The translations under genes were made by a program, and so were the position numbers. Below the pieces are notes generated by a model. That model was not told where the DNA came from. It was given only the letters and a program-made list of their open reading frames with translations, and did not search any database. From Salpingoeca rosetta (lineage: Eukaryota; Protista; Choanoflagellata), in NCBI GenBank assembly GCA_033442325.1, contig JAWQFM010000003.1, forward strand, positions 705,825-769,824: a DNA stretch of 64,000 nt. The letters run 5' to 3'. Positions 52,955 to 54,701 of this stretch are shown one piece after another (the stretch's first letter is position 1; every line of letters begins with the position of its first letter).

Positions 52955-53269
52955 ATGTTAAAGTCAACTGGGAAAGAGGGGCGGCCCAACTTTCAGCTGG
53001 ACTGTGACAAGTTTGCTGCTGAGCAGCTGCGGCAGAAACATGTTTCCAACGTGTACCGCTTGACGCGCGAGGAGCGCCTTCGCATCATGGACCCAGAGTG
53101 CGTCTTGCTGGTGGTGGTTGTTGTTGTTGTTGTGTTGCTGATGGTGGTGGTGGTGAAGCTGTGCATTTGTAGTTGCTGTCGCTGTGTTTGTTGTGCGTGT
53201 CTGTGTCTGTGCGCAGGCCTGTGTGTGTGTCTGTGTCTGTGCGCAGGCCTGTGTGTGTGTGTGTGTGTA

Positions 53270-53347
<78 letters not shown>

Positions 53348-53605
53348 GTTGGACGTTTTCATGTGTACATGTCATGTGGTTGGGGGGGGGTGTCCTTCCT
53401 GCATCCCTTTGCAGTTGTTTGTCCGGCTTCAATCTCACGCCAGTTGCCTTTTGCTCGACAGATGAGCCAAAGAAAGTGATTACATACAAGCTTCCAGATT
53501 ACTCCAAGGTTTCGAGCAAGATTGGCCAGTCCGCCACCTCCCCATACAAACGACGTGCGTGACTTCAAACACACGTGTGTGTGTTTGTGTTTGTGCGTGT
53601 GTGTG

Positions 53606-53636
<31 letters not shown>

Positions 53637-54264
53637 TTGTGCGTGTGTGTGCGCGCGCGGTTGTGCGCGTGTACGCTTGTGTTGAACGCTTGTGCGTGTG
53701 TGTGTACACTTGTGTGCTGCTCGTGCCCGTCTTGTCCTTGCGTGCATCTGCGTTTCGTTCTGTGATTCCGATTGCCTGCTTCCTGGCTTGTGACAGATGG
53801 CGGTAATGTGCGCGTCAAGTTTGGCGTGGCCAAGAAACGCAACCTGCCGCCACTGACGCCGGCAGCGCCGGACCGCGAGGCCACATATCTGCGGCGCAAG
53901 GAGCTGCTTCGCGAGTACACACGCAAGCTGGACCCATCAGGCACGTCGCCAGAGAAGCGGCGGAGCCCTGGCCGCGGGCCGCAGCCCGACGGTGGCGCAA
54001 GCCCAACACATCACAGCAACAAGCAACGACGCGAACAACACGGCAGCGACAGCGGCAGCACCACTGGCCCCAACACTACCACCCACGCCGCCACCAGCAG
54101 CAACAGAAGTGGTGAGAATGACGAGTACAGCCGACACAACGACGTTCGTCGTGCGACTGATCAGACCCCGGCATCACCTGAGTCCCCAACCACCATCAAC
54201 GATCACAAAGATGCTGATGTACATGCATCATCGTACGCGAACGTCGCCGCCCACGGCAATTCAA

Positions 54265-54295
<31 letters not shown>

Positions 54296-54332
54296 TGGTG
54301 CAGTTGAGCTGATGGATGGTCCGCAGGACTGA
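52955..54332 (+). CDS. Uncharacterised ~272-aa largely disordered protein with one Tau/MAP2-like microtubule-binding repeat
   Basis: Exons 52955-53097, 53415-53554 (acceptor tentative) and 53797-54332 (819 nt in frame). The spliced segment reads KVITYKLPDYSKVSSKIGQSATSPYKR-H-GGNVRVK, followed by a basic/Pro-rich and then acidic poly-Asp tail. Confidence 0.62.
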
Positions 54333-54701
54333 GGAACACCATGGGTGGTGGTGGTGGTGTGTGGTGATTGTGGTAGCGCTCTCATGCTGGTCGTGTCATG
54401 GTGGTTGGGAGGGGACGAGGTTCGTATCGTGTGCGGGTCGATGGTTCGTGTCATCATGTGCGGGTGGACGGTGCACGGCAGACACTTTGTGGTTGCCTTC
54501 CCGCTTCCCCTCCCCCCCCCCATTGTTTTGTTTTATTTCTTCTTCCTCATCTTGTTCGTCGTCTTCTTTGACGACTTGGTCTTTTTTGTTGCCCATACAC
54601 GATCTTTTCCTGTGGGTTGTGGTGCTTTGTGATGACTCATTCACACACACACACACACACGCACACACACACATACACACATACACAAGCACGCACACAC
54701 A

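Follow-up and report, generated by a model that had tools for sequence, protein, structure and literature searches.

Tau-like repeats in a Salpingoeca rosetta protein, a candidate microtubule-binding module older than animals

Gene structure and transcripts at the PTSG_02305 locus

We analysed a 64,000-nucleotide stretch of contig JAWQFM010000003.1 from the choanoflagellate Salpingoeca rosetta (hereafter the window), in which a protein search identified the gene PTSG_02305, annotated as a hypothetical protein of 272 residues. It is a small eukaryotic gene on the plus strand, with its ATG at 52955 and its stop codon at 54330–54332. Judged by sequence comparison, its repeats are probably a divergent form of the microtubule-binding module of Tau, MAP2 and MAP4 (microtubule-associated proteins, MAPs), one that would predate animals. 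We searched 1.84 billion representatives exhaustively with a profile and 5.8 billion proteins by word index, and found orthologues in five other choanoflagellates as well as on two environmental contigs. The family comprises proteins from Microstomoeca roanoka (P0002, from a transcriptome), Barroeca monosierra (P0003), Choanoeca perplexa (P0006), Monosiga brevicollis (P0008, MONBRDRAFT_31618) and a EukProt transcriptome (P0010), together with the environmental fragments P0004 and P0005.

Exon 1 (52955–53097, plus strand, as are all gene features below) encodes a conserved N-terminal region, RPNFQLDC...VYRLTREERLRIMDP, and ends at the donor GA|GTGCGT (53097/53098). This exon is genuine: in an alignment, the region agrees with the N-terminal ends of the Monosiga, Choanoeca and P0010 proteins. 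The annotated intron 1 (53098–53461) carries (GTT)n/(GT)n microsatellites, and at least one exon that we expect here is missing from the assembly. Exon 2 (53462–53554) is 93 nucleotides or 31 codons long, has phase-1 introns on both sides and holds one whole Tau-like repeat, R-b, with the peptide EPKKVITYK-LPDYSKVSSKIGQ-SATSPYKR. Its core motif, LPDYSKVSSKIGQ (53491–53529), aligns with the microtubule-contacting segment of Tau repeats in both PF00418 and HMMER alignments. Intron 2 (53555–53796), defined by an RNA-seq joint, is a phase-1 GT..AG intron of 242 nucleotides with an imperfect GT microsatellite inside. Exon 3 (53797–54332), delimited by its open reading frame (ORF), translation and orthologue conservation, runs to the stop codon; its product comprises, in order, (H)GG, the hexapeptide VRVKFG (53808–53825), a basic patch VAKKRNLPPL, the helix PDREATYLRRKELLREYTRKLD (53871–53933) and a long, acidic, disordered tail that terminates in poly-Asp and AVELMD. 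A short motif following poly-Asp/Glu is conserved at the C-termini of the family (54288–54329; P0002, P0004, P0005 and P0008), reading AVELMD, PVELLDD, AIELTDE or AIELQ. It has no match to known motifs and may be a docking or autoinhibitory element.

Two stranded RNA-seq runs and two contig sets were mapped onto positions 53400–54400, with the simple repeats at 53566–53669 and 54257–54306 skipped. The original prediction had joined 53554 to 53797, and the transcripts bear this splice out in phase and in frame. The GT..AG joint, which skips 242 nucleotides between the donor CGAC|GTGCGT (53554/53555) and the acceptor GACAG|AT (53796/53797), is crossed by 94 and 88 reads with 35–37 different start points, and by one transcript contig. 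Splicing is in phase 1, the split codon C|AT encodes His, and the product, ...KVITYKLPDYSKVSSKIGQSATSPYKR-H-GGNVRVKFG..., is identical to the annotated PTSG_02305 in that part. The Microstomoeca roanoka transcript is continuous over the equivalent point (QQKYGGNVRVKY), and the same phase-1 intron occurs in two environmental genomic relatives, contigs L020 and L021. The gene is well expressed; RNA depth is 200–900 across exons and near zero within intron 2, and mate orientation fits an mRNA from the plus strand. Inside exon 3, at 53944–54113, we also observed read pairs of opposite orientation (first mate on the plus strand), with a depth of up to 140–250 against 500–950 for sense pairs; these may reflect an antisense transcript or a library artefact. 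A few reads with joints that lead backwards (54130 to 54070 and 54183 to 54068) fall in the low-complexity Thr/Ser/Asn-coding part of the same exon (54068–54183), and are probably repeat-driven artefacts or length polymorphism.

A missing exon and a second repeat

The annotated junction between exons 1 and 2, by contrast with that between exons 2 and 3, proved wrong: exon 2 starts at 53462 and not at 53415. At 53462, 168 and 353 reads and one contig stop matching the window, and the 30 letters that they carry upstream of this point are not in it. Read in frame, those letters encode IDAQGQVIK and then a split His codon, and the resulting IDAQGQVIK-H matches IDAHGQVPKH and IDANGQVIKH of the orthologues. 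Neither the 30-letter read consensus nor its halves were found anywhere in the window or the 55-Mb assembly, and a tblastn-type search of the S. rosetta genome with the N-terminal parts of the orthologues gave no match. A middle part (RRRPPGxVG..., then ...RIDxxG...KH) is present in all orthologues and absent from the S. rosetta model; IDAQGQVIK-H corresponds to its end. On L020, an exon ending ...IDANGQVIK C|gtacgt sits 104 nucleotides upstream of a 93-nucleotide exon starting ag|AT GAA CGC AAA AAA, which has a phase-1 donor at its end and is followed by an exon starting ag|AT GGC GGG AAT GTT. This 93-nucleotide exon, phase 1 at both ends, occupies 717–809 of L020 and has its counterpart at 99–191 of L021. 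Because the L020 and L021 contigs show this structure, we assign S. rosetta exon 2 to 53462–53554 and conclude that the reference has lost at least one exon within 53098–53461. The missing exon or exons should encode RRRPPG..., a first Tau-like repeat and ...IDAQGQVIK; in S. rosetta itself, this first repeat, R-a, is known only by its last 10 codons, from RNA reads.

(GTT)n/(GT)n arrays fill the interval 53098–53461, along with a 30-nucleotide duplication, which suggests a collapsed or mis-joined assembly region. The annotated PTSG_02305 model uses an acceptor at 53414/53415 and thereby inserts DCLSGFNLTPVAFCST (53415–53461; P0001 residues 48–63). We reject these residues as coding, since they are conserved in no orthologue and are barely covered by reads, with a depth over 53400–53433 of about 1–4% of exon depth. 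The public PTSG_02305 protein sequence is thus partly artefactual, and the reference assembly and the annotation are both wrong at this locus.

The original prediction had suggested a protein with a single repeat; the family instead has two in tandem, the first being encoded by the exon missing from the S. rosetta assembly. R-a, the weaker copy, lies about 30 residues upstream of R-b and reads VLDFQARVTSRID in Monosiga, VIDFHSKVKSKIQ in P0010 and KLEFSKAKPRID in Barroeca. Asp-to-Asp spacing between R-a and R-b is 29, 29, 32, 31 and 31 residues in five orthologues, in keeping with a tandem repeat of 31–32 residues, and the two align with each other in hhalign at 90.6% probability (E 1.3e-6). 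With a profile of R-a alone (A5), which does not overlap R-b, a search of the PDB set described below returned Tau first; the top 20 matches were all Tau, at E 0.015–0.09, aligned to KLDFKDRVQSKI of Tau R4. R-a resembles Tau R4 (LDFxxRVxSKI) and R-b resembles Tau R1 and R3 (PDYSKVSSKIG). Pfam gave no matches on isolated R-a pieces.

Across the six orthologues, the R-b core has an invariant V and I and a conserved S-K/R. A hexapeptide of the VQIxxK type follows R-b in all six (VRVKFG, VRVKYG, IQIKYG, VKIAYG, VQVQYA and VKVEYA), and in the S. rosetta clade, as in the Tau R3 stretch, its Val lies 23 residues beyond the R-b Asp, against 21 residues for the Monosiga clade. This hexapeptide, after the GG, is better kept than the VITYK sequence that had been proposed as PHF6-like, which is poorly conserved (IVSHK and FVQHR in orthologues) and which we rejected as a conserved PHF6 equivalent. 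The GG remnant of PGGG is limited to one clade.

In the AlphaFold2 model of the Monosiga orthologue, N-terminal helices span residues 8–84 and a single confident helix spans residues 185–208 (pLDDT 83–92), corresponding to PDREATYLRRKELLREYTRKL of S. rosetta. The remainder of the model, repeats included, is predicted to be disordered, as in Tau. From these predictions and the search results, the PTSG_02305 family appears as a mostly disordered protein so far seen in choanoflagellates only. The protein searches returned no relative of the whole protein from animals, fungi or any other group, and the family profile, run against the 5.8 billion proteins, matched family members only and no named relatives. 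In a metagenome locus scan, none of 260 pattern matches was confirmed. A literature search returned no paper linking Tau-type repeats with choanoflagellates, or naming PTSG_02305 or MONBRDRAFT_31618.

Similarity to the repeats of Tau

The gapless 16/35 identity to Tau repeat 3 with which the original prediction began was recounted on the HMMER alignment and is correct. None of 2,000,000 composition-preserving shuffles reached even 14 identities to the Tau R3 stretch, a figure that is insufficient alone because the finding came from a very large scan. The curated cut-off of PF00418, the Tubulin-binding repeat family of Pfam, is 27 bits; Barroeca scored 22.6 bits (E 9.6e-5), Monosiga 17.6, S. 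rosetta 15.1 (E 0.02), Microstomoeca 11.9 and Choanoeca 7, and P0010 gave no match. No other repeat family was matched. The PF00418 match fell at one and the same position throughout, and in several orthologues it was the top or only Pfam match there. Against a PDB set of 177,635 sequences, all 45 matches at E ≤ 10 obtained with the S. rosetta peptide, the Barroeca protein and a six-species R-b profile were Tau. The profile matched full-length tau at E of about 1e-4, with the best single repeat at 17.9 bits (i-E 0.026), as against 15.1 bits with the S. rosetta sequence alone. Reversed S. rosetta and Barroeca peptides, run as controls, gave no matches at E ≤ 10, so composition is not the explanation of the Tau matches. 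The proposed kinship with Tau, MAP2 and MAP4 is partly supported, the PF00418 and PDB similarity depending on residue order but all PF00418 scores being below 27 bits.

Two further lines of comparison lead to the same family. In the search of 1.84 billion representatives, the first match outside the choanoflagellate proteins was P0007, a metagenomic eukaryotic protein (E 1.8e-5) that is itself PF00418-positive at 63.6 bits; hhalign to its repeats gave 59% (E 9e-5). By language-model embedding search with Barroeca residues 20–110, three PF00418 clusters came first and ten of the ten best matches were PF00418, at a score of 0.80, which we treat as a lead only. A feature search with P0002 gave no usable match, and structural rows are meaningless for a disordered model.

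The introns offer a separate comparison. Phase-1 introns interrupt the S. rosetta gene at 53461/53462 and 53554/53797, and both are conserved in L020 and L021. In the gapless alignment, the second interrupts the codon that aligns with the first Gly of PGGG in Tau R3, where a phase-1 junction of MAPT had been proposed to lie. If MAPT exon 11 is 82 nucleotides long and follows a phase-0 junction, the exon 11/12 junction would be phase 1 within that Gly codon. MAPT exon 10, which encodes R2, is flanked by phase-0 introns (Sundermann 2016, PMC4815063). A literature search found no paper giving the exact codon of the exon 11/12 junction. An exon for each repeat, together with a phase-1 intron in the codon of that first Gly, would then be a possible point of likeness with Tau, MAP2 and MAP4. 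Within the choanoflagellates, one repeat per symmetric 93-nucleotide phase-1 exon is conserved in three species of one clade. The pattern fits growth by exon duplication and is suggestive of a shared history.

The microtubule-bound Tau segment, VKSKIGSTENLK, and the role of each of its residues have been described in a preprint (10.1101/267153). The Tau contacts S258, K259, I260 and G261 are matched by S, K, I and G in S. rosetta. We ran a tubulin complex prediction with alpha-tubulin (L012:1495-2847), beta-tubulin (L010:1495-2829) and P0001 residues 65–112, which scored 0.00 and speaks neither for nor against binding. The S. rosetta tubulins are themselves intron-less ORFs, beta in two copies of 445 amino acids (L010:1495-2832 and L011:1495-2832) and alpha of 451 amino acids (L012:1495-2850), which is unusual among S. 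rosetta genes, otherwise intron-rich.

A number of results weigh against reading the repeats as a Tau-type module. The 16/35 match was picked from a very large scan, in which a one-off chance match could occur. No orthologue attains the PF00418 cut-off, the best reaching 22.6 of 27 bits; the Pfam alignment covers only model positions 1–20 of 31 (2–18 in S. rosetta), and a six-frame PF00418 scan of the S. rosetta genome returned nothing at E ≤ 10. The significance of the PDB matches comes largely from summing Tau's four mutually related repeats. The embedding search with the Monosiga part gave no match, and R-a showed no significant similarity to the P0007 repeats. R-a and R-b are, moreover, paralogues, so that the Tau likeness of both is not independent evidence. 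Several residues that mark the classical repeats are replaced. The regulatory Ser262 of Tau, the MARK site in R1, is Gln in S. rosetta, where the KXGS motif reads KIGQ as originally stated. It is Gln also in Barroeca, Microstomoeca and Choanoeca, and Ser only in Monosiga and P0010, in both of which the preceding Gly is Asp; the Gly is present in two species. The V-K-S-K-I/C-G-S segment with its KXGS serine was not found as a whole, though V, S, K/R and I are conserved. Asn265, in the R1 beta-turn, is described as universal among the repeats of classical MAPs (10.1101/267153) and is replaced by Thr in S. rosetta and by variable residues in the orthologues, and Tau Lys267 is replaced by Pro in S. 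rosetta. After R-b, S. rosetta, Barroeca, Microstomoeca, L020 and L021 have HGG or YGG, but a remnant of PGGG is absent in Monosiga, Choanoeca and P0010, and after R-a. Lastly, the intron at 53554/53797, present in S. rosetta, L020 and L021, is absent in Monosiga brevicollis, whose single intron, phase 1 and in the codon just before Glu132, has the place and phase of 53461/53462. This tempers the shared-history argument, the change being either a loss or a gain.

Origin of the repeats

With these points taken together, we put at about 0.5–0.55 the probability that this family and the animal MAPs have homologous repeat modules with a common mode of microtubule binding. On this reading the N-terminal region of the protein is short and helical, and its basic centre holds two repeats of the Tau/MAP2/MAP4 type about 31 residues apart, followed by a GG remnant, a V-x-V/I-x-Y/F-G hexapeptide at the spacing seen in Tau, an amphipathic helix that is conserved, and an acidic tail. 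Each repeat in the S. rosetta clade ends at a phase-1 intron, making R-b a self-contained 93-nucleotide exon, as would be expected if repeats multiply by duplication of exons. We speculate that the two repeats would extend along the protofilament, with the conserved S-K-I of each anchoring on alpha-tubulin as in Tau, and that the acidic tail could project away or damp binding. While the repeat module probably shares ancestry with the animal MAP module, the protein would not be an orthologue of Tau, MAP2 or MAP4, because the rest of it is unlike Tau.

The likeness could also have arisen by convergence or chance, if a K/S/P-rich short linear motif in a disordered protein came to resemble the first half of a Tau repeat without shared ancestry and with some other function, for example that of a phospho-regulated adaptor or of a basic-acidic protein in the nucleus or nucleolus. 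This alternative, which we consider somewhat doubtful but well within reach, draws on much of what has just been said: every Pfam score is below threshold, single-repeat E-values against the PDB are only 0.03–0.4, conservation does not extend to PGGG, the KXGS Ser or the Asn, and the scan brings a large multiple-testing burden. One clade also shows the strongest Tau likeness, which is weak in Choanoeca and P0010; the protein searches found no orthologue of the whole protein in animals, and a 31-residue period could come from any extended binding surface. Against it, two adjacent repeats, their period, the 23-residue hexapeptide spacing and the GG share a single gapless register with Tau. Conservation within the family falls on the positions shared with Tau, the family profile gives Tau a higher score than the single sequence does (17.9 versus 15.1 bits for the best repeat), the reversed controls are blank, and the embedding search, an independent method, also indicates PF00418.

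It is far less probable that the family belongs to another described group that our searches under-detected, such as proteins of the flagellum or fibrous sheath, or acidic proteins associated with the spliceosome or with phosphatases, in which the Tau-like stretch would be incidental. Pfam does give sub-threshold matches of this kind, to FSIP1 (18 bits, in Monosiga), Cwf15/Cwc15 (16 bits), and PPP4R2 and NOA36 over the acidic tails. Such matches fall far short of their cut-offs, vary from one orthologue to another and sit in acidic or coiled regions of low complexity, and no named relatives appeared in the 1.84 and 5.8 billion proteins.

On the reading of a Tau-type module, the choanoflagellate proteins share with Tau, MAP2 and MAP4 (PF00418, including invertebrate tau-like proteins) tandem repeats of about 31 residues in a disordered basic region, a core of D-[LYF]-S/K-x-V-x-S-K-I-G with GG about 10 residues on and a V-x-I/V-x-Y hexapeptide 23 residues after the Asp, and reciprocal best similarity in PDB, Pfam and embedding searches. 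Unlike the animal proteins, they have two repeats rather than three to five, lie below the Pfam cut-off, have HGG or nothing for PGGG and Gln or other residues for the MARK-target Ser, lack the universal Asn, and are only about 160–330 residues long in total. Their flanks are unrelated to those of Tau, with N-terminal helices, a conserved helix and an acidic tail in place of a projection domain or proline-rich region. As several defining features fail, we do not file PTSG_02305 as a member of the Tau/MAP2/MAP4 family.

P0007 presents a different architecture around a similar motif. Its ILHxPxPDYSKVxSKVG is nearly the same as the choanoflagellate ITYKLPDYSKVSSKIG, but occurs in at least 8 copies at a spacing of 85–96 residues within one intron-less ORF of 968 residues, with no similarity outside the motif. 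P0007 (L009:2083-4989) and P0011, both metagenomic eukaryotic proteins, contain at least 8 repeats of about 96 residues, each with one Tau-like motif (PMPDYSNIQAKVGTW...KIGGD), and the P0007 contig also carries a reverse-transcriptase ORF. A search with P0007 as query found one relative only.

The Tau/MAP2/MAP4 repeat module has generally been traced only to a non-vertebrate metazoan ancestor (PMC4815063). Tau-like repeats are nevertheless not strictly animal-restricted, as the original prediction had taken them to be. A protein of Rhizopus delemar, with Tau-like repeats and an architecture unlike that of animal MAPs, is listed in Sundermann 2016 (PMC4815063). Rhizopus delemar is, like S. rosetta, a non-animal opisthokont, and its repeats are, by description only, recognisable ones, compared with the sub-threshold choanoflagellate repeats. 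With this protein reported, a pre-animal origin is not unprecedented. A fuller account, which we offer tentatively and would rate at somewhat under an even chance, is that the Tau/MAP2/MAP4 repeat predates animals and that the choanoflagellate two-repeat protein lies near the ancestral module, each symmetric phase-1 exon holding a single 31-codon repeat. From that module the three-to-five-repeat animal MAPs would have arisen by exon duplication and fusion to new flanking domains.

Tau, MAP2 and MAP4 have central roles in the cytoskeleton of neurons and in tauopathies. If the reading is true, the origin of their repeat module moves to before animals, and the aggregation-prone V-x-I-x-Y hexapeptide and the S-K-I tubulin anchor would be older than neurons. 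The family would further provide a minimal, natural two-repeat version for the study of tubulin binding, free of PGGG and KXGS regulation, and the question is directly testable in S. rosetta, a transfectable and editable organism.

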